Below are positions 3,001-64,000 of a stretch of 64,000 bases of DNA, in pieces. The stretch's first letter is position 1, and each line of letters opens with the position of its first letter. A program made the translations under genes and the position numbers. The DNA comes from Macrostomum lignano (taxonomy: Eukaryota): positions 195,275 through 259,274 of the forward strand of contig NIVC01000740.1 of the NCBI GenBank assembly GCA_002269645.1. The letters are read 5' to 3'. The notes beneath the pieces are model-generated. The model saw nothing but the letters and a program-made list of their open reading frames with translations, did no database searches and was not told where the DNA came from.

Positions 3001-18752
<15,752 letters not shown>

Positions 18753-21460: not shown

Positions 21461-21945
21461 TCACGTCCGCGAGTTCGGGCAGGGTTCGCACGAGTCGCAC
21501 TCGGCCGAAATCGTGCGGTCCTTTTTGACCTCCAGCACTCGGCAGTAGCCTGAGCAGCAGTCCTTGCCGCTCCAGCACCTGGTGCCGCCTTCTGAGCACG
21601 ACTTGCTGGATGAGCAGGCCGGCGCCATCTCTAGCTTTGCAGTGAGGAAATTTTTGTATTTATATAGATACTTTATATAGAGTCTTTGGGGTTAATGGCC
21701 CTCCTGGGTGCGAATGGCTCAGTATAACCCACCAGAGCCATGCAATACCTGTACTTGAAAAGAAGTCTCAATTGTCAGTTAATAAATGGCATTGCAAATG
21801 CATAAAACAGCTACTCACGCGTAACAAGAGTTATGATAATCAAAAAGTTGAACGTTTGTAATTTAGTGAAGAAGATGGAACTGTGTGCAAAGTGCAGTTG
21901 GGTTCGAAGATCGGTGGTACTGAGACTACGGACACTTGGCTGCAT
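21461..21945 (-). CDS. Secreted inhibitor-cystine-knot (conotoxin-like) peptide A, 2 exons, ~98 aa
   Basis: Exon 1 is 21945-21819 (MQPSVRSL...KLQTFNFLIIITLVT, donor C|GTGAGT). Exon 2 is 21630-21461 (acceptor CTAG|, phase 1). The joined product ends ...LVTQMAPACSSSKSCSEGGTRCWSGKDCCSGYCRVLEVKKDRTISAECDSCEPCPNSRT*. The start codon and exact acceptor are less certain than for peptide B. Confidence 0.8.
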
Positions 21946-22504: not shown

Positions 22505-22829
22505 TCAGGTGCACTCTGCAGTGAACGTCAAGTTCGGCCAGGCCTTGAGCACTCTGCAGTAGTGTGAGCAGCAGTCTTTGCCCGACCAGCAGCTCACTCC
22601 GTTGACCAGACATGGCTCTGTGGCGGGGCAGGCGACTGATGATCTCAAGTCTGCAACAAATTGATCGGGTAACGGACTGCTCTTTGTTCATTCTAGTCTT
22701 GGTTTTAATTAGGAAATAAAATCGTTATTTATAGTTGATAGTAGTCGATAGACTGCCTGAAAACTCACAGATTAGCAGTAAATTGAAGAAAGCAAGCAGA
22801 AGTGACTTCACGGACTGGCGTATTTTCAT
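22505..22829 (-). CDS. Secreted inhibitor-cystine-knot (conotoxin-like) peptide B, 2 exons, 68 aa
   Basis: Exon 1 is 22829-22769 (donor T|GTGAGT), the intron is 118 nt, and exon 2 is 22650-22505 (acceptor TTGCAG|). Product: MKIRQSVKSLLLAFFNLLLIYLRSSVACPATEPCLVNGVSCWSGKDCCSHYCRVLKAWPNLTFTAECT*. Confidence 0.88.
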
Positions 22830-22983
22830 GGCTGCGTGATCAAGTTGGCAAAACTGCAAACTGACTTCTTGTGGTGGTCGCTCAAGTGAAGGTGGGTGCC
22901 AAAGCGCACGGCACCGAGAAGTAAATAAAAGTCCTTGTCTTGAAATTGTCTGTGGCTGAAAACCTGTTTCTTGTAAAAGAACA

Positions 22984-23409
22984 CGAAGCCTTCGGCATCT
23001 CCTACCCTGAGGTGGTCTCGAACGCGGCCCTCTACCGACGAGCCGGCCTGCGACCACCCAGCGAGACCATCCGGCGGCGGCGGCTGCAGCTGGCGGGCCA
23101 CGTGATCCGCGCGGAAACCTACTGCCCTGAACCGGTGCAGGACGTCCTGCTGCTCACGCTGCGGGGCCCCTGGCGCCGAGGGCAGGCCAGGACGCGCCGG
23201 TACGTGGACTGCCTGCTGGCTGACGCCGGTGTCATCGGCCAGACCAACGCTGCGGCTGCCTTCAGGGAGCAAGCCAGAAGGAGAGTGCTCTGACACTGCC
23301 GCCACGCTCTCACATTTCCGTTTCTTTCCCCCCCTTTTTTGCTCTTCCGTCCCGTGCTGCCCCCTTTTCCTTTTGCTTTCTTTTGCGGCGGTGTACATGT
23401 ATGTATGTA
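22984..23409 (+). mobile_element. 5'-truncated non-LTR retrotransposon (LINE, RTE-like C-terminus)
   Basis: Encodes ...ETIRRRRLQLAGHVIRA...RRRVL* and ends in an (ATGT)n tail. It is flanked by the 12-bp direct repeat TGTAAAAGAACA at 22972-22983 and 23410-23421. Confidence 0.85.
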
Positions 23410-23526
23410 TGTAAAAGAACAAGACTCTGCTTTTACAAATCAAAGAGACCATTCTAAATCAGAATTTATTGCAAAAATTTTATATACCGGTATTTAAAGC
23501 AGAAATTTTCAGTGGAAAGAAACCAT

Positions 23527-24626
23527 ATGTCTGGCTGGCTTATGTTACTCCTGCTGGGCCTCTCCGTCAGCAGCCAACTGATTACATGTGAGTCAGGGAG
23601 TTTTCAATATCAGCGTTGCGCGCCATCATTGTGTTATGAACTTTCATGTTCTGAATTCGTGTTCTGAATTCGTGTTCTGAATTCGTGTTCTGAATTCGTG
23701 TTCTGAATTCGTGTTCTGAATTCGTGTTCTGAATTTATGTTCTGAATTCGTGTTCTGAATTCGTGTTCTGAATTCGTGTTCTGAATTCGTGTTCTGAATT
23801 CGTGTTCTGAATTTGTGTTCTGAATTCGTGTTCTGAATTCGTGTTCTGAATTCGTCTTCTGAATTCGTGTTCTGAATTCGTGTTCTGAATTCGTGTTCTG
23901 AATTCGTGTTCTGAATTCGTGTTCTGAATTCGTGTTCTGAATTCGTGTTCTGAATTCGTGTTCTGAATTCGTGTTCTGAATTCGTGTTCTGAATTCGTGT
24001 TCTGAATTCGTGTTCTGAATTCGTGTTCTGAATTCGTGTTCTGAATTAGTGTTCTGAATTCGTGTTCTGAATTCGTGTTCTGAATTCGTGTTCTGAATTC
24101 GTGTTCTGAATTCGTGTTCTGAATTCGTGTTCTGAATTCGTGTTCTGAATTCGTGTTCTGAATTCGTGTTCTGAATTCGTGTTCTGAATTCGTGTTCTGA
24201 ATTCGTGTTCTGAATTCGTGTTCTGAATTCGTGTTCTGAATTCGTGTTCTGAATTCGTGTTCTGAATTCGTGTTCTGAATTCGTGTTCTGAATTCGTGTT
24301 CTGAATTCGTGTTCTGAATTCGTGTTCTGAATTCGTGTTCTGAATTCGTGTTCTGAATTCGTGTTCTGAATTCGTGTTCTGAATTAGTGTTCTGAATTAG
24401 TGTTCTGAATTCGTGTTCTGAATTAGTGTTCTGAATTCGTGTTCTGAATTAGTGTTCTGAATTCGTGTTCACGAAGCTTCTTTCCTCCAATCCAGCAGCG
24501 CAGGCCTGCAAGTGCGCCAGGGACCACCGCGGCTGCACCCTGAGTCTGCGCGTCCTGCTGATGAAGCTGAGCTGGCACCAGGCTCCCGCGGCCTCATCGC
24601 TTGGGGGGAAGAAACCGCATCACTAG
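23527..24626 (+). CDS. Small secreted peptide C, 2 exons, 63 aa
   Basis: Exon 1 is 23527-23587 (MSGWLMLLLLGLSVSSQLIT, T|GTGAGT). Exon 2 is 24496-24626 after a pyrimidine tract + CCAG. Product ends ...ITSAQACKCARDHRGCTLSLRVLLMKLSWHQAPAASSLGGKKPHH*. The 61-nt phase-1 signal exon has the same layout as peptide B. Confidence 0.65.
23645..24470. repeat. 13-bp minisatellite (gaattcgtgttct)n, ~63 copies, inside the intron of peptide C
   Basis: Near-perfect tandem array. Confidence 0.97.
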
Positions 24627-25699: not shown

Positions 25700-28577
25700 T
25701 TAAATAACATTTTTAAATATGAAAATCAGCACCCTCTGCGCAAATTTTTAATAACAATATTTGTTGTTAATATGTACGCTCGTAAGTACGGTTGAATTTT
25801 TAAAAGAGCGCTTCGAATCACTTCGTACTGACCTGCTTGAGGAAATTTTCCAGGCTGAACAAATTCGATTTTTGCAGTGTCCACAGCGTTTGTTCATGCA
25901 CACTATGCGGCTTGCGGCAACGATCCATTTTGTGACCAGCATCAGGTGCGATGCAGAGTTGATCCTGCCTGGCATTTGGACGGCAGTCTCGAATTCGAAG
26001 CCATTTCGAGTTTCCCTTCTTGGCCACCAACAGCCAGGACTCCTGGCACTCATGCAGACCAGCGGGCCCGATGTCCTTTTTCAGTGTATAGTGCACCTGA
26101 TCCTCCGATTCACAGCAGTTGTCGCAGCCGAGACGCCAGCAATTGCCTTGCTCGATCATCGATGTTGGAAACCTGGCCTGCGATTGAAAAGTTTTTTCAT
26201 AATGACCAGAGGTTTTGGTATAGACTGTTAGACCATAGACTATAGACTATTCAGTGAAGACCATAGACTATATAGAGACTATTCAGTAAAGACCATAGAC
26301 TATAGAGACTATTCAGTGAAGACCATAGACTATAGAGACTATTCAGTGAAGACCATAGACTATAGAGACTACTCAGTGAAGACCATAGACTATAGAGACT
26401 ATTCAGTGAAGACCATAGACTATAGAGACTATTCAGTGAAGACCATAGACTATAGAGACTATTCAGTGAAGACCATAGACTATATAGAGACTACTCAGTG
26501 AAGACCATAGACTATAGAGACTATTCAGTGAAGACCATAGACTATAGAGACTATTCAGTGAAGACCATAGACTATAGAGACTATTCAGTGAAGACCATAG
26601 ACTATAGAGACTATTCAGTGAAGACCATAGACTATAGAGACTATTCAGTGAAGACCATAGACTATATAGAGACTATTCAGTGAAGACCATAGACTATAGA
26701 GACTATTCAGTGAAGACCATAGACTATAGAGACTATTCAGTGAAGACCATAGACTATAGAGACTATTCAGTGAAGACCATAGACTATATAGAGACTATTC
26801 AGTGAAGACCATAGACTAAGACCGTGTTAAGTCAATGTCAATCAGACTCCAGAAAAAATATACCAATATCTCGCATTCTGGACTTCTGTATTGAAAACAA
26901 AGCAATTCTGCTTTTTTCGAAATTGATGCACAAGTTTCTTACGCTAAAGCTGTCAGTCCAGTCAGGTATCATAAATTCTACCAGAGACAAACCGACTAGT
27001 TTGAGCAAAGTGAGCGAAGTTCTGGCGATCCCACTATTTTCGTGCGTTCTATATACGACCTAAGTTAAGTTGCTGTCCATGCTTTACGAGTGTAAGTACA
27101 TGTAGTTTGATGCATTTAGCCACGATTTTTAAACGGCTGTTGAATATAATTTACAATTTACGAGAAAACTCACAGTTTTATCATTTTCTGGCTTAAGATA
27201 TTCCTTGATCCAATTTTTGTCCAGTTGATCCAGACCGGCTGCTCCAGATGCTTCCTCAATTTGTCTTCTTTTGTGCTGGGACACAAAACGTAAGCTCGGT
27301 AGCCGCTCAGCTGCCTCCTTCATCCGGCGAATGCCCTCGGCGGGATCTTGGCCGCTGACCAGGAGAAAGCGGCCGAACTCGAACCGGACGTGAAGCCTCG
27401 TCTTGTTGCTGTCTGCAGCAGCCTGCTCTTCGAGGGCTTCGTATCTCTCACGAAGTTCGACCTTGTCGACAGCTTCTTCATTCTCATTCAGACCCAGCAG
27501 CCTCAGCTGGGCCCAGGTGTTTGTTAGATCGACTTTTTGCAGCAAGTATCTGGCTTTCTGGATTCTGTCCTCGCCAGCATCTTTTGTTTTGATGAAGTAC
27601 AGAGCGCACTGGAAAGCGAAATCGCTCTTCAGGAACTCGCTATCTGACAGAGTCTCGCCAGTCTTCAAAACCTTCAGCTCCTTGTTCTTGAGCCTTTTCT
27701 TGAGAATTTGGTCCTGGTCTCCTTGGATTGGCACTTTCTTCCACTGCACCATTTTTGTCAGTCCGCGATAGACTTTGCAGCAGGTGATGTATACCTGGAG
27801 GTGCTCGCCTGCAAACTGAACCGCCTCATCTGCCAGCTGCTCAGACTTGTTGAAATGAACAGCGGAGTACGCGAGGGCCTCAGCGAACCGAGCCAGAAAC
27901 ATCGGGTGCTGGACTTTACATTTGTCCAGAATCCTCTTAGCCTCATCCCACAGCTCCACTCTTTCCTCTCCAATCTCAGCACTGAGGTCCGCCTGACGCC
28001 TCTGCATGGCCATCGCCTCTGCCAGACCGAAGCGCCAGTGGAAGCTCTGGACCGACTGCTCCAGATGGTGCTCCACCTCCAGCTTCAGGGCCTCCCGGAA
28101 CGCCTTCGCGGCCTCCTCCAGCTGCTGCCTCCCGAAGCTGAGCAGAGTCCAGCCTTTGGCGCCCCAGACTGAGGCCCGGACCTGCGGCTTCTGCCACTCA
28201 TCAGAGAGCTTCTGAAGCATCATCTGCTCTTGCTGCTCATCTGGGTGGAATTTGTTCATCAGGTGCAGCTCCGTGGCCTCGATCAGGAAGGCCACATCCA
28301 TGGTTAAAGGTGAATTAGCATTCAAATCCAGCTTTGCTTCGTTAAGGTACTTCAGACACCGTGCTTCATCACCAGGTTGCTCCAGCATGTGCACGTAGAC
28401 CAGACTCAGCAGGTGCAGCCCCTTTAGTCCGAGCTGGGTGTCCATCCTGCCTTGCAAGCTGCTGACGAGTCTGTCGATGCTCTCTGGGCTCTCGGCAAGT
28501 TTCGGCCTCCACTGGAAGTGACACGGAACCTCGCCCAGGCTCTTGAAAGACTCCGCTGGATTGTTGAGTTCCGCCAT
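25700..28577 (-). CDS. IFIT-like tetratricopeptide-repeat protein with a C-terminal ZC3H7/HELZ2-like Cys/His module (~630 aa)
   Basis: Exons: 28577-27174 (MAELNN...CHFQW...GAKGWTLLSFG...ALKL...HWRFGLAEA; donor ACT|GTGAGT), 27059-26943 (117 nt, phase 0/0), 26177-25833 (CWRLGCDNC...HECQESWLLV...KWLRIR...LC...CRKPHSVHEQTLW) and a tentative last exon 25735-25700. Otherwise the read-through stop is at 25818. All junctions are phase 0 and in frame. Confidence 0.72.
26230..26820. repeat. 30-bp minisatellite (gactatagagactattcagtgaagaccata)n in an intron of the IFIT-like gene
   Basis: About 19 units, some with a TA insertion. Confidence 0.96.
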
Positions 28578-31549: not shown

Positions 31550-32010
31550 GGGGTCCATAGACACGGACAGGTGAGGTCCTTAAACACGGATACACAGGGT
31601 CAATAGACATGGACAGGAGGGGTCAGGCGGGGTCCATAGACATGGACAGGCGGGGTCAGGTGGTGTCCATAGACACGGACAGGCGGGGTCAGGTGGGGTC
31701 CATAGACACGGACTGGCGGGGTCAGGTGGGGTCCATAGACACGGACAGGCGGGGTCAGGTGGGGTCCATAGACACGGACAGGCGGGGTCAGGTGGGGTCC
31801 ATAGACATGGACAGGCAGGGTCAGGTAGGCTCCATAGACACGGACAGGCGGGGTCAGGTAGGCTCCATAGACACGGACAGGCGGGGTCAGGTAGGCTTCA
31901 TAGACACGGACAGGCGGGGTCAGGTAGGCTCCATAGACACGGACAGGCGGGGTCATGTAGGCTCCATAGACACGGACAGGCGGGGTCAGGTGGGGTCCAT
32001 AGACATGGAC
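31550..32010. repeat. 30-bp minisatellite (gtccatagacacggacaggcggggtcaggt)n overlapping the zinc-finger stop codon
   Basis: About 14 units. Confidence 0.95.
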
Positions 32011-32810
32011 AGGCGGCGCGCGTGGGCCCGCAGGTGGCGCACCAGGTCGCCGGGGCGCTGGAAGCCGCGCGGGCAGATCACGCAGTCGAGTCGGCGACCG
32101 GCGGCGATGGCGTCTTCGTCCTCGTGCGCCCGCCGGTGGCTGTCCAGGTGGCTGCGGCGGGCGAAGCGGTGCTGGCAGAGGTCACATTGGAACGGCCGCT
32201 CGTTGGCGTGCAGGCGGCGGTGGCTCAGCAGGGAGCCGCTCTGGGCGAAGCTGCGGCCGCACTGGGCGCAGGCAAAGGGCCGCTCGCCAGAGTGCGTGCG
32301 GCGGTGGCGGGACAGGTCGGTGTTGCGCGGGAACTGCCGGCCGCACTGGTCGCAGCTGAACGGGCGCTCCTCGGTGTGCCGGGCCCGCAGATGGCTGCGC
32401 AGGTTGCTGAGGCGGGCGAAGCTGGACGGGCACTGCTCGCAGCTGAAGGGCCGCTCGCCGCTGTGCACCCGCATGTGGCTGCTGAGGTGGCTCCGCTGGC
32501 CGAAGGCGAGGCCGCAGTCGCCGCAGCGGTGCGGTTTCGCGTGGCTCCGCCGATGCCGAGACAGCTGGCGGAGCTCCGGGAAGCGGCGCGGACAGTCCGG
32601 ACAGCTGAACTGCTCGGCCGCGGCGGCCTCCATGGCGTCAGGCGGCTGGCGCTGGTCGGGCGCGGACTGCCGATCCTCAGTGTGCGGCTGCTGCTGCTGC
32701 AAGTCGGGCATGGCGGGGCGGGGGTCAGAGACCAGCTGCTCAGCCGCGGTGTGCATATATTGGGGCCGGCAGCGGCTCACATGCCGGCTCACTGTGTGGC
32801 AATGCGCCAT
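31986..32810 (-). CDS. C2H2 zinc-finger protein (7 fingers)
   Basis: Seven CxxC-x12-HxxxH(H) motifs with H-SGERPF-type linkers. The true start or upstream exon is uncertain. Confidence 0.9.
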   Translation of the reverse strand: MAHCHTVSRHVSRCRPQYMHTAAEQLVSDPRPAMPDLQQQQPHTEDRQSAPDQRQPPDAMEAAAAEQFSCPDCPRRFPELRQLSRHRRSHAKPHRCGDCGLAFGQRSHLSSHMRVHSGERPFSCEQCPSSFARLSNLRSHLRARHTEERPFSCDQCGRQFPRNTDLSRHRRTHSGERPFACAQCGRSFAQSGSLLSHRRLHANERPFQCDLCQHRFARRSHLDSHRRAHEDEDAIAAGRRLDCVICPRGFQRPGDLVRHLRAHARRLSMSMDPT

Positions 32811-33359: not shown

Positions 33360-35699
33360 TCACACGGGCTTCGTGACCATCAGAGCAGCTGACGGGCACA
33401 GGTCCAGCGTGTACAGCGGCTTCTCCATGTCCTCAGCGGTGAACACCCGCTTTGGGAACAGCGTCATAAGGGCGAAGTCCTCACCAGCCCGGCCGTCTGT
33501 CCGGTTGGTTCGAACGTAGCAGGCCACCGCCGCGAGGCTCTCCTTGGCGCCGAACTGGGTAGTGAGCGGCTGGCCGCCGCCCGACAGGCGGATCTGCAGC
33601 CGGCAGGTGTCGCCGTCCGACACCGCGGCGGGGGTCGCCGCCTTCGGCAGGCTCGGGCCAGACGGCGCGCCAGCGGCAGCCGCAGGGGCAGCCGGTTGAC
33701 CCGCGGCCGCTCGGCGCTCTTCGGCTTCGCGCGCCTCCATCTCGGCGCGGTCCTGCGCGTAGCGCTGCCTAATGCGCGCCAGGTACTCGCGCTGCTCCTC
33801 CTTCTCGCGCCGGCGCGCCTCGGCCTCGCGCTTTAACTCCTGCTCAGCGGACTCCTCGCGCCACTTTTTGAGGCCTTTGCCGTCCGTGCGCCGCTTCCGC
33901 TCGCGCTCCAGCTCCGCCCGGCGCTCCTCAGCCTCCCGCTCTTGGCGCTTCGCCTCCAGCTTGGCCTCCAGCTGGCGCAGCTGCTCCGCCTTCTCCTCGG
34001 CTGTCAGGGCGCGGACCTGCGGTTAGGGCGGGGCGGATTCTGCTTGAGAGCTGAGATGGGGGCGGATTTTGGTTGAGAGCTGAGATGGGGGCGGATTTTG
34101 GTTGAGAGCTGAGATGGGGGCGGATTTTGGTTGAGAGCTGAGATGGGGGCGGATTTTGGTTGAGAGCTGAGATGGGGGCGGATTTTGGTTGAGAGCTGAG
34201 ATGGGGGCGGATCATCCGCTAGTTGGGGGCGGATTATCCGCTAGTTGGGGCGGATCATCCGCTAGTTGGGGGCGGATCATCCGCTAGTTGGGGGCGGATC
34301 ATCCGCTAGTTGGGGGCGGATCATCCGCTAGTTGGGGGCGGATCATCCGCTAGTTGGGGGCGGATCATCCGCTAGTTGGGGGCGGATCATCTGCTAGTTG
34401 GGGGCGGATCATCCGCTAGTTGGGGGCAGTGGCGGATCTGGCATTAGATAATGAGTTCGCTGACATTAACAGCCCTTCCCCAGCTGCTCACCTCCTCCGT
34501 GGACTGGGAGAAGTTGGCGTGGCCGGTCTTGGCGGCGTGGAATTCGGCCTCGGCCGGGCTGCGGAACAACTTGCCGCAGTCGTCGCACTTCAAAGATTTT
34601 GCATCGGCATCGGTGGCCTCCGCCGAGCCGGCGGTGCCTCCCGCCGACTCTCCTGACGCCGCCGACGAAGCAGCTGCCGCGTTGGCTGCCGGCGCGGGCT
34701 CCGGTTCCGGGATCGGGTCGTCAATATCCGGGTCATCCTGGTGGCTGGACAGCCTGCGGAATTTCCGAGGAAAAAGCAGAGTTAGGCAATGTTGGCATTG
34801 CCGAGTCAGCTGGGGTAAGATCGCTACTTGGTTAGAGGCGATTCTCAGCTGAGGTCAGATGGCGGTTCTCATGGTGAGATCGGGGGGCGATTCTCATGGT
34901 GAGATCAGGGGAGGATTCTCATGGTGAGATCAGGGGGCGATTCTCATGGTTAGATCAGTGGGCAATTCTCATGGTGAGATCAGGGGGCGATTCTCATGGT
35001 GAGATCAGGGGGCGATTCTCATGGTGAGATCAGGGGGTGATTCTCATGGTGAGATCAGGGGGCGATTCTCATGGTGAGATCAGGGGGTGATTCTCATGGT
35101 GAGATCAGGGGGCGATTCTCATGGTGAGATCAGGGGGCGATTCTCATGGTGAGATCAGGGGGTGATTCTCATGGTGAGATCAGGGGGCGATTCTCATGGT
35201 GAGATCAGGGGGTGATTCTCATGGTGAGATCAGGGGAGGATTCTCATGGTGAGATCAGGGGGCGATTCTCATGGTGAGATCAGTAGGCGGTTCTCAGGTG
35301 GTATCAGGTGTCAGTAGGGTCAGGGTGGATCCTCGGTTGATGTCAGAGAGTGACTTAGGTCTATCAAAATTCAAAGCCAAAATCGACAAACTAAATAAGT
35401 TATTACATTGTTACGATATTACTTGTAATATTAGTATACTCGTACTGATTAAACCAGCAAAAACATGAGTTTGAGAAACTTTAAGTAATACACTGGACTT
35501 ACCAGTCCATTGCTGCTTCAATCCCTTTGTTCCCTGACTTCAACAGAGCTTTTTTTCTAAAAAAAAAAGACAAAATAACGATTTCACTGGCAATGTAGCT
35601 TGTAGACATAGCAAGTGATTTATTTGGCATTTCTTACGCTCTGATTTCGGAGAAACCCATGTCTAAGAGCATGCTCAGGTTGGAGTCATTGGATGACAT
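33360..35699 (-). CDS. UBXN1: UBX domain-containing protein 1 (UBA + coiled coil + UBX), 4 exons
   Basis: Exons: 35699-35638 (MSSNDSNLSMLLDMGFSEIR), 35555-35503 (KALLKSGNKGIEAAMDW), 34753-34492 (LSSHQDDP...CDDCGK...HAAKTGH...STEE) and 34016-33360 (coiled coil, RLQIRL...FPKRVF...LCPSAAL*). The exon 1/2 junction is 1 nt out of frame as sequenced. Confidence 0.9.
34030..34430. repeat. Adjacent 29-bp and 22-bp minisatellites in UBXN1 intron 3
   Basis: (gagagctgagatgggggcggattttggtt)n followed by (gggggcggatcatccgctagtt)n. Confidence 0.93.
34865..35285. repeat. 25-bp minisatellite (cagggggcgattctcatggtgagat)n in UBXN1 intron 2
   Basis: About 16 units. Confidence 0.94.
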
Positions 35700-43999: not shown

Positions 44000-44003
44000 C
44001 TAG

Positions 44004-44036
<33 letters not shown>

Positions 44037-45467
44037 TGTTGCCGCTGTCTGTACGCAAACTGGGGAACGTGGCCGAGGCGCGAGCACCGGAGCAGGAATG
44101 CACGGATTGACAACTCACCAGTGCGGTACTGCGCCCAGTACCGCTCCACACTCGTTTGCAGACGCTCGTACCGTGCTCTGTGCTGGCGCTCCTGAGCACC
44201 CTGGTTCACCAGCGCGGCATGCACTGGCACAAGCTTGGCCTCCATGTGCAGCAGGTGCAGGAGTGGGTAGAGTGTCAACTGCACTCTCTCGGCCCGCTGC
44301 TCGAGTCTCCGGTGCCAGCCCTCGACCTCGTTGTTGGTACGTATTGACTGGCAGTACACACTGACTTCGTGGACTCCGTGGACCGGGTTCGACAGCCAGG
44401 TTGCGCTCACGTACTCGGCCAGGTCCAGCAGCAGCGGCGCGTGCACACCAGCAACGATCTGCGCCAGACCCTCGCCCATGTGCTCGGCCGGCAGGTAGGG
44501 GAGCGCCATGAGCATGCGAGCGAAGTCGCGGGTGCCAGGATCTGTCAGATAGGCCTGCTGCAGGCCCAGGTGCTGCAAGCGACGAAATATCGCCTGCGCG
44601 AAGTGAAACAGGCAGCCCTGGAACCTTGCAGCCGGAAACACGGACCGTAAAGCCTGCCATGCCGCAGCTTCGAAGTCCATGACACAGACCTCCGGCGTCG
44701 AGTTGCCCAGTCCCTGTTTCAGTGCAGAGAAGACAGCAGTGTAGTCATTTACCGACTTACCTGACATTAGTGCGAAAGCCAGAGGAACCTGCTTGATTGT
44801 CGTTCCCTGTCGGATGTAGCAGTGCACCGAGTACAGCTGTTTGAAGGGGGCATGAACGACATCGAAGGTGCCGTCCAGAAACCACAATCTGCGGGAGACA
44901 AGCAACTCGATCTGGTTGGATGTGTAAAGAAGCAGATGACGCTTACCTGAGCCTTCGACTCGGACATCGCTGCGGAGAAAATTCGGAGGCAGATGATCCA
45001 AGGCCAGTGCAAACTGGAGGTCGACTGGAGGCTGCGGGCGCCCAACCTCACGAGACCGATTGGCGATGCGCACCAGCTGATTGATTGGGCCAATGTGCCC
45101 GGTCTCCAGCAACTTCGCCTCCACGATTGCTGCAGCCGATCTCCACCGCAGGCTCCGCCGCAGGCTCCGCCGCAGGCTCCGCCGCAGGCTCCGCCGCAGG
45201 CTCCGCCGCAGGCTCCGCCGCAGGCTCCGCCGCAGGCTCCGCCGCAGGCTCCGCCGCAGGCTCCGCCGCAGGCTCCGCCGCTGGTCTTGCCTGACAAGTG
45301 GCACACGACCATACAAACACGTCCTGCCGCATAAGCTGCCTGTACTCTGCTTGTGAGATTCTAGTCCCACAAGTTCGATGTTGCCACTTTTGGCATGAAT
45401 CGCACTGTATGGCCTGTTGACGTGGCCGCACAGTCTCTGAGCACTGAATACACTTATCAGTCTCCAT
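44000..45467 (-). pseudogene. PHD finger + MULE transposase, frameshifted after a 12-bp repeat
   Basis: ATG at 45467 gives C4HC3 PHD (CIQC...CDSCQKWQHRTC...WSCATC). After the (PAAE)n repeat the frame switches to the transposase with WFLDGTF, CVMDFE, GCLFHF and RTNNEVEGWH. Confidence 0.85.
45145..45280. repeat. 12-bp tandem repeat (gcaggctccgcc)n inside the MULE ORF
   Basis: About 11 units. Confidence 0.95.
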
Positions 45468-59659: not shown

Positions 59660-60078
59660 AAAGTTTTGCATGTATGTTTTTCATTAAAGGTATGCACTTT
59701 TACATGCACCTGTGATTGTGTGTGTATGTGTGTAATAGTGATAGCCCATAATTCATGGGTTTTGTACTTTGAGACAGCGTGGCCAAATGAATACAATGCA
59801 ATTGCAAGAAGTGATTGCAGAGAAGAAAAAGTCACAAAGGCTTGGAAGGCTGGTGTGCACTTATATTATAGTTAAACTACTAACCTGCATGATTCAGCAA
59901 ACACCAAACCCCCCACCCGGCCTAGGCTGGTCTGGGCAGACAGACAAACACCCTAGCCAATCAGAATGCAAGAACACTAACCGGTGTACAAGCTGCATAC
60001 ACAACAATGGAGTCTCAATTGTGACAGCCCAGTGCATCCAAATCTTGCATTTCTTCCACCCACTGCATTTCTCTCCAG

Positions 60079-63000
60079 TCAACGCCAAGAAGTCAGGCTG
60101 CTCAGCAGCCGGAAGGCGCCCCAGGCCAGCTGCAGCAGCTGTCCTATCCCTACCTCAATCTGTTCAAGGAGCTGGGCGTTGGCCAATGGAACAGGTCAGA
60201 GTGCCATGGCGGGGTGGCCTCCTACATGGACCAGACTGTTAAGTCAACTGCCTTCAGCATCCAGGGCGCGGTTTCCGCCTCCAACTACATCCAGCTGCCC
60301 AGGCCTGCTGGCCGCGGCCTGCAGCTGCAGTGCCGCTACCTGTACGTGCAGTTCCGGCCCAGCCCCGGCCGCCACTTCGTGCTGCACGTGGACCTGGCAG
60401 CGGCCGGCACCGCCGCCCCGGTGCGGCTCAGCGTCAGCAGCCTCTACAAGCGGCCTGCCGGCGGCGCCGCTGCCATCAAGCTGCCGTTCGTCTTCGACGC
60501 CGACGGCCGAGGCCGCCTGCTGGCCGCGCCGCCGGACGAGTCCGAGGCGCCGGCGGCCGGGGCGCCCTGCCGGAGGCGGCCCGCTGGACTCTGCTGCGTC
60601 TCGACCTGGACTGGGCGCTGCGGGTGTTCGCCGGGGTTCGTCTCGGCTGCCTGCGCGGCCTTCGGCTCTGCGCCTGCATGAGCGCCCGCGCCGTCTTTGC
60701 CGCCTCCAGGCGCTACCAGCCGGGCGCATCGCCCGGCTCCGAGGAGGCGCTGCCCCGCGCCATGGCCTTCTTCCTGGGCCGCGGCGAGCGCTTTGAAGAT
60801 CGCTACGATTTTGTGCAGCTGCCCGAGCCCACAGTCGAAGCTCGCGAGGCCGCGTCTCCTGTCGGGCCGGCTGAGCGAAGACCCTCGCCGCCGCCTGCGC
60901 CGCTGACGCCGCCGCCGCCTCAACAGCCGCAGTCGTCCTTCGTCAGGCCGGCTGCTTCTGTGCCGGCGTCAGCAGCGGCGGAGCTGCGCCTGTCGCGGGT
61001 GCTGGGCTGCACACAGCCGCACAGCGCCTGCTGGACCCAGGAGGAGCTGGTCTTCCCCTGCCACGCCCTGGTGGTGGCCCAGTGCCTGGCCACCGGCCGC
61101 CAGCGCTTCTTCACCGGCCACACGGACTCCGTTGGCTGCGTGGCCGTGGACTCCGCCTGCGGCCGGATGGCCAGCGGCCAGCGCGGCCTGCTCCGCCTGT
61201 GGGACTTCGCCGGCCAGCGCTGCCTGGCCCACTGTCCGGCCTTTCAGCTGGGCGCCGGCCTTCTGGCCTTCTCGCCCGGCGGCCTTCGGTTGGCTGGCAC
61301 CGGCCGGGACGCTCACGGACGCTTTGTGGTCACCGTCTGGCAGGTGAGCCGGGGCTGGCGTGCTGGGATTTGAATCAAGATAGGATGGGATTTGAGTCAT
61401 GATTGGATGGGATTTGGGCCTGGGATGTGGAATCTGGTGGATAATTTTCCCCACATCCGCGATCCCCAGACGGACGGGCCGGTCGTCCGGTTGCTCGCCA
61501 AGGCCTGCAGCGACCAGGCCCCCGTTGCCCTGCACTTCCTGGACGAGGCGCGCGTAGTCACCTGCGGCCGCGGCGCCGTTCGCTTCTGGCGCGTCAAAGG
61601 CGGCGGCGGCGCCGCCGGAACCTCGGCGCTGCTCCGCTCGGCGCCGGCTGCCCTGGGCGAGTACGCGGCGCTGGACTTCACCGCCGTCTGCCCGCTGCCC
61701 GGGCCTGCCGACGCTGACCCGCTGGTGCTGGCCTGCGCCCGGTCCGGCCACGTGCTCGAGCTCGGCGCCTCCGACCTGGCCGTCCGGCGCGCCCGCCGCC
61801 TGCTGCCGTCGGACCGGACAGCCTGGCGTGGCCGAGCTCGGCCGGCCGGCATCGAGGTGTCCGCGGTGGCGGCCAACGAGTCCTTCTGCGTGACGGGCTC
61901 GGCCGATGGCTTCCTGCGCGTCTGGCCGCTCGACTTCTCGCAGGTGGGTCTTCGACTCGAGGTCCCTCACTTGAAGCTCGCTTTATCTCTGTGTTTGACC
62001 CTGGGACTAATTTGTGCGGGCTGATTTGGAAATGAACTGGTGCACCGCCTCTTGCAGGGAAGTCTAGTTATAATGTATTGAAATTTCCTCTTATCTTGAA
62101 ATTGACCAAAAATACCTTGACCAAAATTACACCTGACTGAATTACACTTGACTGTAGCTGACCAAATCATACCTGACCAAATTACACCTGACCAAATTAC
62201 ACCTGACCAAATTACACCTGACCAAATTACACCTGACCAAATTACACCTGACCAAATTACACCTGACCAAATTACACCTGACCAATTTACACCTGACCAA
62301 ATTATAACCTGACCAAATTACACCTGACCAAATTACACCTGACTAAATTACACCTGACCAAATTATAACCTGACCAAATTACACCTGACCAAATTACACC
62401 TGACCAAATTACACCTGACCAAATTACACCTGACCAAATTACACCTGACCAAATTACACCTGACCAAATTACACCTGACCAAATTACACCTGACTAAATT
62501 ACACCTGACCAATTTACACCTGACCAAAAAGCACCTGACCAATTTACACCTGACCAAAAAGCACCTGACCAAATTACACCTGACCAAATAGCACCTGACC
62601 AAATTACACCTGACCAAATAGCACCTGACCAAATTACACCTGACCGAATTAAACCTGACCGATATTACCCCAAACCTTACCTTATGAAATTCCCCGCTCG
62701 CCCAGGTGCTCCTCGAGGCCGAGCACGAGAGCCCAGTGGTGACCGCCGCTCTCAGTCGGGACGGCGCCAGCGCCCTGGCCGCCACCGCCGCCGGCTGCCT
62801 CGGAGTCCTGGACGTTGCCCGCCGCGCCTACCGGACACTCGTCCGCTCGCCCGGCCCCGGCCCGGTTGCCTCGCCCACCTCGGCCGGGACACCCTGGCCA
62901 CGGTGTCCGCCGGCGACAAGTCGCTCCGCCTGTGGAGCTCCGACCGCCTCGACCAGTGCCAGAGCTTCGGCCTCGCTGAGCCGCCCTGCCGCGTCGCTGT

Positions 63001-63804
63001 TCACCCCCGCGACGGCCTCGCCGCTTGCGGCTTCCGCTCCGGCCACGTCCGCTTGTTCGACCTGGCCGCCGCTTCCATGCTGGGTGAGCGGCGCAGCCAT
63101 AGCGGCGCCGTCAGCGGGCTCGCCTTCTCCGCCTGCGGCCTCCGCCTGTTCTCCTGCGGCTCCGACGGCGGCCTGTCGGTTCACGACGCCTCGGCGGCCT
63201 GCGCGCTGCTCCGCTCCGTGCCCGACGTTGTCGCCAGGGTCGGCGCCGGCGGCTCCGAGGACCGTCCGAGCCCGCTGGCCGTGGACTCGGCCGACCCCGG
63301 CGGCTCCCTCATTGCCTACATCGGGCCGACCGGCGCCGCGGTTGTCGTGGCCGAAGGCGCCACCCTCGCTGAGCTGATCCGCGTAGACGTCACCATGGTC
63401 GCCGGGGCGGGCGTGGCGGACGCAGCCCGCGCCTGCAGTTCGGCGCCGGGCACCTCCTGGTGGCCACGGAGGGCGGCCGCCTACTTCGATTGGAGCGCCG
63501 TTCCGGCCGCCTGGCCTCCCAGCTGTCCGGCCTCGGCCGCTGCGACTGCCTCTGCCTGAGCCCGGACGGCCGTTACTGCGTGGCCGGGGTTGGCCGGCAG
63601 CTGAAGCTGTTCCAGAACTGCTCGACCGGACAGGTGCAGTTCTCCAGCTTCCTGGGCCACAGCGGCCGAATTTGCGCGCTCGCCTTTAGCGCCGACGGCG
63701 CCAGACTGATGTCCGTTGGGGAGGCGGTCCTCGTCTGGGACTTCATGGCCCCGCCGGCATCTGAGAAGCCTGCCGAGAACCTCAGGACTGAGAACGGCGC
63801 CAAG
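60079..63804 (+). CDS. WDR90: WD repeat-containing protein 90 (CFAP20-like N-terminal domain + WD40 repeats), partial, with apparent frameshifts
   Basis: Exons 60079-61343, 61470-61943 and 62706-63804 (tentative donor). Motifs YPYLNLFK, IQGAVSASNYIQLP, RYLYVQFRP, RAMAF...DRY, FFTGHTDSV and SADGFLRVWPLDF match the WDR90 architecture. Frame switches occur at ~60565, ~62870 and ~63440. The start exon was not located and the gene probably continues past the window. Confidence 0.85.
62170..62660. repeat. 15-bp minisatellite (ctgaccaaattacac)n in a WDR90 intron
   Basis: About 32 units. Confidence 0.95.
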
Positions 63805-63819
63805 GTTTGTGGACAGTGA

Positions 63820-64000
63820 AACCAGCCCCGCCTGACTCCCAATGCCACATCAGCCTCCCCACCTCACTCCCAATGTACATCAGCCTCCCCACCTCACTCC
63901 CAATGTACATCAGCCTCCCCACCTCACTCCCAATACACATCAGCCTCCCCACCTCACTCCAATACATCAGCCTCCCACCTCACTCCAATGTACATCAGCC
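63820..64000. repeat. ~30-bp minisatellite (cagcctccccacctcactcccaatgtacat)n
   Basis: Tandem units continue to the window end. Confidence 0.9.

Follow-up and report, generated by a model that had tools for sequence, protein, structure and literature searches.

We analyzed the final 64,000 nt of contig NIVC01000740.1 (referred to here as the window) from the Mlig_3_7 assembly (GCA_002269645.1) of the free-living flatworm Macrostomum lignano. Positions are those of the window; adding 195,274 gives positions in the contig record. An IFIT-like TPR clamp (exon 1; 222,448-223,851 in the contig record, minus strand) and a HELZ2-type zinc-finger unit (221,107-221,451, minus strand) lie on the same strand with approximately 1 kb between them and are accompanied by signals that could serve to join them. 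An earlier reading of this DNA from its letters alone (the sequence-only reading) had recognized it as invertebrate, in agreement with its source, and had described an IFIT-like protein joined by splicing to a zinc-finger module; the motifs, the open reading frame (ORF), and the exon coordinates were all recovered on the minus strand where that reading had placed them. An unannotated M. lignano gene at this locus encodes a divergent IFIT-family protein. Its kinship with IFITs is solid; the domain fusion and the function are less settled. The best explanation overall, to which we assign a probability of roughly 0.55, is a divergent IFIT-family gene in which the TPR exon is cis-spliced to the zinc-finger exon.

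Gene model at the locus

Exon 1 opens at 28577 with an ATG in the context GCCATGG and is followed directly by GTGAGT after its 468th codon (Table 1). Without splicing, the frame continues for 14 more codons to a TAA (27131-27129), giving 482 residues. From stop to stop, the ORF spans 529 codons, which is far beyond chance. Its codon usage scored +0.44 bits/codon in frame versus -0.26 and -0.57 in the other two frames, and its G+C content at third codon positions (GC3) was 0.67. The CHFTW-type N-terminal motif of IFITs is present as CHFQW at residues 19 to 23, the same place as C18-W22 of IFIT5, and GAKGWTLLSFG occupies residues 139 to 149 (KGWTLLSFG, residues 141 to 149). Pfam returned nothing significant for this exon; a TPR_2 match was below the threshold.

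The gene is apparently unannotated in the GenBank record, because its product was absent in any form from a collection of 15 billion proteins that does contain the M. lignano GenBank proteins of this assembly. No protein with at least 50% identity to the window gene was present in that collection, which holds other M. lignano proteins with PAA accessions. Exact-product look-ups gave no record for the read-through ORF and likewise none for the neighboring C2H2 ORF. Word-index protein searches with the full model, with the zinc-finger module alignment, and with one homolog of the module (P0023) retrieved only the queries themselves, and all of the homologs described below came from an exhaustive HMMER scan. 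An Rfam scan of the window detected no RNA family.

The donor that follows exon 1 is the sole GT[AG]AGT on the minus strand between 28900 and 25000 (3.9 kb), against a window-wide frequency of 0.34 per kb and strand. Donors in M. lignano follow GT[G/A]AG, and the acceptor norm is CAG (PMC8629364). The proposed intron has a G+C content of 0.37 versus 0.54 and 0.52 for the flanking exons; the mean intron length in the species is 1.1 to 1.4 kb (PMC5730564). The intron holds a minisatellite, and the introns of the adjacent clathrin gene contain similar arrays of 200 to 620 bp.

The sequence-only reading had placed three phase-0 exons downstream of exon 1, all of which proved to be bounded by GT/AG. 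Their coordinates and the zinc-finger exon held up, whereas the two small exons ("exon 2" and "exon 4") had no coding signal. "Exon 2" scored -0.54 bits/codon, a value reached or exceeded by 61% of stop-free noncoding windows and lower than that of every 39-codon window of exon 1. Its GC3 was 0.49 (versus 0.67 in exon 1), its acceptor is TAG, and its donor is GTAAGA. No homolog of either small exon was found in the HMMER scan or by local tblastn. Because the small exons look noncoding and lack homologs, the simplest model joins exon 1 straight to the Cys/His exon, and joining 27174 directly to 26177 likewise keeps the frame. The fusion product would comprise approximately 587 residues and end in ...FLKQVSTK. 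The first poly(A)-signal-like hexamer 3' of exon 1 is only a weak indication, because the region is AT rich.

Table 1. Features of the IFIT-like gene and of the remainder of the window
Feature	Position	Strand	Basis or remark
Exon 1, complete IFIT-like TPR clamp, 468 codons	28577-27174	-	ORF and translation, codon usage, IFIT homology, predicted fold
Splice donor GTGAGT	27173-27168	-	Immediately 3' of codon 468; read-through stop 42 nt farther on; fits GT[G/A]AG
Proposed single intron, 996 nt, GT..AG, phase 0	27173-26178	-	Low G+C content, no poly(A) hexamer, typical length
"Exon 2," 39 codons, probably intronic	27059-26943	-	Codon score, GC3, no homolog, TAG acceptor
30-nt minisatellite, 19.4 copies	26230-26818	.	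TRF; inside the proposed intron
Zinc-finger exon, 115 codons	26177-25833	-	Homologs, module profile, relative upstream of a HELZ2-type gene, AlphaFold2 pLDDT 78
Read-through tail VSTK and stop TGA (25820-25818)	25832-25818	-	Likelier end of the reading frame; donor GTCAGT departs from GT[G/A]AG
ATTAAA, first poly(A)-signal-like hexamer 3' of exon 1	25752-25747	-	66 nt after TGA; pattern scan
"Exon 4" (RVLIFIFKNVI*), unsupported	25735-25700	-	G+C content 0.24, codon score -0.93 bits/codon, no homology
Clathrin heavy chain	~6-18 kb		
C2H2 factor	31986-32810		
UBX protein	33360-33740		
hAT transposase, intact, 671 residues	38981-40996		ZBED1-like, Dimer_Tnp_hAT
MULE-domain transposase ORF	44000-45370		N-terminal (SLRR)n repeat
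WDR90/POC16 beta-propeller exons	60-64 kb, right end		Pfam 7e-39
Mini-/microsatellite arrays	9603-10108, 10574-11041, 12944-13137, 14979-15430, 15633-15915, 16560-17180, 24000-24470, 26230-26818		

Relationship of the TPR exon to vertebrate IFITs

When the window protein alone was searched against PDB sequences, IFIT5 was the sole match; it was weak (E value, 0.18) and aligned at CHFQW/CHFTW and at KGWTLLSFG/KGWALLKFG. An exhaustive phmmer (HMMER) scan of 1.84 billion representative proteins then gave 24 matches to the window model. Fifteen of them, including the best (E values, 1e-13 to 1e-6), form an unnamed family characterized by L-x-LECHF[NT]W-x-PE, with members on ENA metagenome contigs and in M. 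lignano itself (PAA92423.1 and PAA70660.1/PAA70671.1). Five more are vertebrate proteins, the only organism-named matches outside this invertebrate family. Four of these are annotated as IFIT5-like or IFIT1-like and come from frogs (Phyllobates, 1.6e-7; Dendropsophus, 5.9e-5), the milkfish (Chanos, 2e-6), and a stingray (Hypanus, 3.5e-6). The fifth, from the electric eel (Electrophorus, 5.9e-6), is labeled "hypothetical protein" and contains CHFTW and EKGWTLLKF. No named TPR family besides IFIT appeared in the scan.

When a profile was made from the window protein and its invertebrate family alone, IFIT5 (5.6e-10), IFIT2, IFIT1, and IFIT3 ranked on top in the PDB. Positions 4 to 88 of this profile, which cover the non-TPR CHFxW cap and the first hairpin, matched only IFITs there, while consensus-TPR designs aligned to just one repeat. 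Alignment with a vertebrate IFIT profile by hhalign reached a probability of 99.2% (E value, 7e-20) over 359 columns, spanning residues 12 to 423 of 468. An AlphaFold2 model of the clamp, with the invertebrate alignment as the input, had a predicted local distance difference test score (pLDDT) of 86 and a predicted template modeling score (pTM) of 0.83. In a Foldseek search of the PDB, the 13 top-ranked matches of this model were without exception chains of IFIT1 or IFIT5 that aligned along the full length, with template modeling (TM) scores of 0.58 to 0.66 over 480 to 520 columns for 11 chains and of 0.42 to 0.46 for two IFIT5 entries. The next match, the TPR domain of O-GlcNAc transferase, had a more than 10-fold-worse E value, and other TPR proteins among the top 30 had TM scores of 0.46 at most. 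Structure-based identity between the window clamp and IFITs was 14 to 16%. The IFIT likeness claimed for this exon in the sequence-only reading was thus borne out by sequence, profile, and predicted fold, the best structural matches being IFITs rather than unrelated TPR families. Together these four independent lines, the last of them a predicted model, lend good support to the view that the exon encodes a true distant relative of vertebrate IFITs.

The window protein and vertebrate IFIT1/IFIT5 (PDB 4hoq and 5w5h) have in common the N-terminal L-x-x-L-x-CHF-x-W cap; the motifs KGW-x-LL-x-FG, A-x3-F-x2-AL-x-L-x-P, and W-x2-G-x-A; and the encoding of approximately 470 residues by one large exon. 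Vertebrate IFIT genes typically have two exons, the first of which contains only the ATG and 2 nt (PMC3688568), whereas the ATG of the window gene lies inside the large exon, continuous with its 468 codons; the two-exon layout is a descriptive trait and not a defining one. The window gene also has, unlike IFIT1 and IFIT5, a putative C-terminal zinc finger.

Judged by its sequence, the window gene belongs to a so-far-unnamed invertebrate branch of the IFIT family that includes further M. lignano paralogs and members on eukaryotic contigs. The M. lignano members PAA92423.1 (BOX15_Mlig030191g2) and PAA70671.1 (BOX15_Mlig000529g2) have, like the rest of this family, 25 to 30% identity to the window protein over the first ~250 residues and the same motifs, and these two paralogs from the same species are likewise encoded mostly by one long exon. 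Long invertebrate members (860 to 1,090 residues) have additional helical repeats and a conserved C-terminal block, while the window gene ends after an IFIT-sized clamp. Because Pfam has no match for the block, it counts as an unknown domain, and it could be the effector part of the family. Both M. lignano paralogs end in other modules than the window gene: each carries the REH...AAEFAEE block, and PAA92423.1 additionally ends in RGG repeats (RGRGGSEHF, approximately five times), which the window gene lacks. These tails fit a scheme, drawn from sequence comparison, of one clamp with exchangeable C-terminal parts.

The C-terminal block reads REH..AW..W..EKH..Y[DE][VL]AH.AAEFAE[EQ] (in a fuller form, [AK]REH[HR]I..(x5)AW..W..(x6)[DE]KH ... 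Y[DE][VL]AH.AAEFAE[EQ]); it was seen in PAA92423.1 (residues ~870 to 960; L003:8600-8900) and also in P0002, P0016, P0022, and P0028. A shared intron position with PAA92423.1 was considered as a further character and was dropped as uninformative, because that gene consists of one 1,036-codon exon and a short last exon.

The residues of the IFIT5 pocket for the RNA 5' end include K150, R186, E33, T37, Q41, Y250, R253, and Q288. The equivalents of K150 and R186 were placed reliably, with invariant motifs on their flanks. K150 (in LLKFG) corresponds to Ser in the window protein and to Cys, Arg, or Ser in the invertebrate family; it is also missing from some vertebrate IFITs in the alignment. R186 (in G-x-A-x4-R) corresponds to Met, most other members of the invertebrate family having Arg or Lys. 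For helix 2 (E33, T37, and Q41), HMMER and hhalign differed by 3 residues and the placement is ambiguous. Mapping of the C-terminal pocket residues (Y250, R253, K257, R260, H287, and Q288) was abandoned because the two methods disagreed by one repeat. The net charge and isoelectric point of the window protein were not discriminating. The sequence-only reading had proposed an antiviral RNA-sensing protein and had noted that vertebrate IFITs bind 5'-triphosphate or cap-0 viral RNA; because both anchored pocket residues are replaced, the alignment does not support such binding in the manner of vertebrate IFITs.

The zinc-finger exon and competing readings of the locus

The exon at 26177-25833 encodes, in order, a C-x2-C...H-x-C knuckle, WLRIR, a CCCH-type finger, and E-x3-W...F...F, in exact agreement with the pattern noted earlier (C-x2-C ... 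H-x-C ... W-x2-IR ... LC ... C-x2-PHS-x2-E-x3-W). Its codon usage was weakly coding (+0.085 bits/codon) and above that of both other frames. Four homologs were found (P0018, P0020, P0021, and P0023; scan E values, 5e-5 to 7e-4; local tblastn, 3e-11), one of which (P0023) contains seven tandem copies of the module. An alignment of 10 module copies had 14 invariant positions (L16, C18-x2-C21, C44 with a His before it, L49, W59-x3-R63, C75...C87-x3-H91, and E95-x3-W99...F107...F112), and the window exon keeps all 14. Its Cys/His residues run C18-x2-C21 ... H42-x-C44, followed by C75 ... C87-x3-H91. Of two nearly invariant positions, S92 is kept and the second CCCH Cys is replaced.

Compared with solved fingers, the module profile matched TIS11d/TTP and Roquin best (E values, 3e-5 to 6e-4), and ZC3H7A was also matched. 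The C3H1 fingers of TIS11/TTP and Roquin have a similar core, C-x(5-8)-C-x(5-6)-C-x3-H followed by AHS/AHG-x-x-E, over only ~28 residues; the module's other parts (N-terminal knuckle, W-x2-IR strand, and C-terminal W...F...F helices) have no solved counterpart. The ZC3H7A finger (PDB 2d9m) gave the longest alignment (43 to 44 residues, with HR..G.Y..C upstream and E...W downstream) at weak E values (0.0045 with the profile and 0.1 with the single sequence), TIS11-type fingers ranking higher on the core. ZC3H7 proteins pair TPRs with CCCH fingers. The AlphaFold2 model of the module (pLDDT, 78) had no Foldseek match in the PDB.

One homolog, P0021, combines two units with jaz-type C2H2 fingers, and its ORF immediately precedes a same-strand series of helicase–OB_HELZ2–RNB–helicase ORFs. 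The order downstream of P0021 is further CCCH/jaz-type C2H2 pieces, an AAA_11/AAA_12 helicase, OB_HELZ2 (2.1e-9), RNB (3.9e-70), and a second helicase. Because of this position relative to a helicase–OB_HELZ2–RNB gene, the label "HELZ2-like" holds. HELZ2 is an antiviral 3'-5' exoribonuclease and helicase. The human protein is interferon induced and has six N-terminal fingers in which C2H2-like and CCCH types alternate and additional Cys and His are conserved, and HELZ2 is present in some corals and mollusks (PMC10516660). Compared with that published description, the window module has the same succession of a C2H2-like finger and a CCCH finger with extra Cys/His; it differs in being a single unit, in the replaced second CCCH Cys, and in the absence of a helicase or RNB. 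The resemblance to HELZ2 proposed in the sequence-only reading is therefore upheld, by the CCCH-finger profile and by the gene context of P0021. The resemblance to ZC3H7 proposed there is possible, the profile having matched 2d9m at weak E values. We assign the exon on sequence grounds as one HELZ2-type unit of a C2H2-like (C2HC-like) knuckle and a CCCH finger. The possibility that it is the 5' end of a HELZ2 gene was rejected, because no helicase or RNB sequence was found within the 64-kb window.

A HELZ2-type gene on ENA contig ERZ28675667 ctg1934 (L007:7500-22067) has, in this order, jaz-type C2H2 fingers and C2HC/CCCH units, then a helicase, OB_HELZ2, RNB, and another helicase. The gene caller split it into many ORFs, and under the standard code some of these contain internal stops. 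A TPR-like ORF (7584-7946) lies upstream on the same strand.

The signals between the two exons of the window moderately favor cis-splicing of the TPR exon to the zinc-finger exon across the intron at 27173-26178. The lone consensus donor in 3.9 kb stands 42 nt before the ORF's own stop, and the donor and acceptor boundaries are both in phase 0. A pattern scan for AATAAA, ATTAAA, AGTAAA, and TATAAA found none between the exons. The only internal ATG of the zinc-finger frame stands 3' of the module's conserved F-P. Where a donor lies upstream in cis, cis-splicing of an acceptor is expected (PMC8629364), and the proposed intron is of ordinary length for M. lignano.

Several observations weigh against this reading. 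The two modules occurred together in none of the 24 homologs. No zinc-finger module was found within 10 kb of five other IFIT-like family members (loci L003, L004, L008, and L009), and no TPR member was found near two zinc-finger genes (loci L006 and L007). M. lignano trans-splices 30% of its genes with a spliced leader that ends in ATG (PMC8629364), and this start codon would match the reading frame of the zinc-finger exon. The second Cys of the CCCH finger is missing, which leaves C-x6-H-x4-C-x3-H with a His one residue from that position; the C3H1 ligand set C-x(6-14)-C-x(4-5)-C-x3-H is not present in the window copy, and Pfam does not recognize the exon. On the IFIT side, the fold evidence is a predicted model and not a solved structure, and both reliably placed IFIT5 pocket residues are replaced (K150 to S and R186 to M). 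To these may be added the missing product in the 15-billion-protein collection.

A serious rival, possible though short of an even chance, holds that the locus is an operon, a single transcription unit with two genes: the first, IFIT-like, would stop at the TAA at 27131-27129 (482 residues), and a separate zinc-finger ORF of ~120 residues would receive the spliced leader at 26178/26177. The end of the leader (...TTGCATG; PMC8629364) would read straight into the zinc-finger exon as M-ARFPTSMIEQ..., and approximately 7% of M. lignano transcription units are polycistronic (PMC5730564). Operon spacers are often swollen by repeats, the published cutoff being 1 kb after repeat subtraction (PMC8629364); the spacer here measures 951 nt, or ~360 nt without the minisatellite. 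The separation of the modules in all 24 homologs also agrees with two genes. However, a perfect cis donor upstream of an acceptor normally gives cis-splicing (PMC8629364), the acceptor reads TCGCAG, at odds with the trans-splice motif [T/C]TNCAG (PMC8629364), and the upstream gene would have no poly(A) hexamer. A one-unit zinc-finger protein would furthermore be unusual, because all known relatives of the module carry at least two units.

It is improbable that the zinc-finger exon arose by exon shuffling from a HELZ2-like gene and now persists unexpressed or in decay, with only the IFIT-like ORF functional. The loss of the second CCCH Cys, the single unit without a helicase or RNB in the window, the weakly positive codon score (+0.085 bits/codon), and the TPR/zinc-finger adjacency that is not conserved in the other loci compared would all suit such a relic. 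The frame is nevertheless open across 115 codons and outscores the other two, the 14 invariant positions and one of the two nearly invariant ones are kept, a His lies one residue from the missing Cys, and good acceptor and donor signals flank the exon.

We consider it equally doubtful that the four-exon, 633-residue transcript of the sequence-only reading (28577-27174, 27059-26943, 26177-25833, and 25735-25700) is real. Each of its junctions is GT/AG and in phase 0, and the GTAAGA donor of "exon 2" fits GT[G/A]AG. Against it, "exon 2" and "exon 4" are noncoding in composition and without homologs, the "exon 2" acceptor is TAG and not the CAG of the species (PMC8629364), and the GTCAGT donor of the zinc-finger exon is off consensus.

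The weakest rival, that the TPR exon encodes an ordinary TPR protein with merely generic repeat similarity to IFITs, could draw on the subthreshold TPR_2 match as the only Pfam signal, on the 14 to 16% structure-based identity, and on the precedent of the acorn worm, lancelet, and lamprey IFIT candidates that were judged in 2013 to be generic FKBP-like TPR proteins (PMC3688568), but it is close to refuted by a match that includes the non-TPR CHFxW segment (for which IFITs are the sole PDB matches), by named matches among 1.84 billion proteins that are IFITs throughout, by the hhalign E value of 7e-20 over almost the whole length, and by TM scores of 0.58 to 0.66 for the best IFIT chains versus 0.46 or less for other TPR proteins in the top 30, with the more than 10-fold gap in E value.

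Possible function and genomic surroundings

If the TPR exon is cis-spliced to the zinc-finger exon, the product would be a cytoplasmic RNA-binding protein. Its CCCH-type unit may contact single-stranded RNA, by analogy with the CCCH fingers of TTP, Roquin, and HELZ2, and the IFIT-like clamp would provide a second ligand pocket or a protein-docking scaffold. Because the two anchored pocket residues are lost, the clamp is probably not a classical 5'-triphosphate pocket. Analogy with vertebrate IFIT and HELZ2 suggests, and only suggests, a role in RNA surveillance or antiviral defense. To our knowledge, the flatworm host has no interferon system. As a tentative wider picture, the IFIT clamp may be an old animal family whose C-terminal modules are interchangeable and which persists in flatworms and other invertebrates. 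One M. lignano copy would have captured a HELZ2-type unit; this would have created a single-chain RNA sensor or restriction factor from two modules that later came under vertebrate interferon control.

In the standard account, IFITs arose with jawed vertebrates together with interferon (PMC3688568), and a zebrafish/human comparison described IFIT as a "young" family (bioRxiv 10.1101/693333). We found no report of IFIT homologs in flatworms or other invertebrates in the open-access literature. The flatworm protein and the wider unnamed family pass the sequence, profile, and predicted-fold tests for an IFIT relationship, and the origin of the fold would therefore lie much deeper in animal evolution. 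M. lignano is a tractable laboratory animal (RNA interference and transgenesis) in which the function of an IFIT-like clamp can be studied without interferon. If the fusion is true, it is a combination unseen in the 24 homologs that links two RNA-directed defense families; if it is false, the locus contains a distant IFIT homolog beside a small CCCH protein, a result that would keep its value as the annotation of a gene so far without one. Were the protein found to be induced by foreign RNA or to restrict it, part of the interferon effector toolkit would predate interferon.

The sequence-only reading had viewed the surroundings as a possible defense locus. This was not borne out: the neighbors are housekeeping genes and transposons (Table 1), with retroelement debris also among them, and the 64-kb window bears no mark of a defense island around the gene. 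The hAT element was probably active recently, because an identical protein copy of its transposase is present on contig NIVC01001888.1. A Cys-rich ORF of 55 residues on the minus strand (21461-21628; ...CSEGGTRCWSGKDCCSGYCRV...CDSCEPC...) has a knottin-like spacing and no Pfam match; it may be part of a cluster of secreted peptides that the sequence-only reading had placed beside the gene.

Minisatellites and microsatellites (periods of 4, 13, 21 to 61, 28, 30, and 42 nt) crowd the introns and spacers and give rise to many long spurious ORFs on both strands. Overlapping ORFs on both strands at 22826-23452 had no Pfam match; the plus-strand ORF, judged by eye, may represent the C-terminal tail of ORF2 of a non-long-terminal-repeat retrotransposon. 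The window ends (1-1715 and 60000-64000) have G+C contents of 0.60 to 0.70 versus 0.29 to 0.38 in intergenic DNA, and the ORFs at the left end (1-1715) are presumably retroelement-like, judged by eye from apparent protease and reverse transcriptase motifs.

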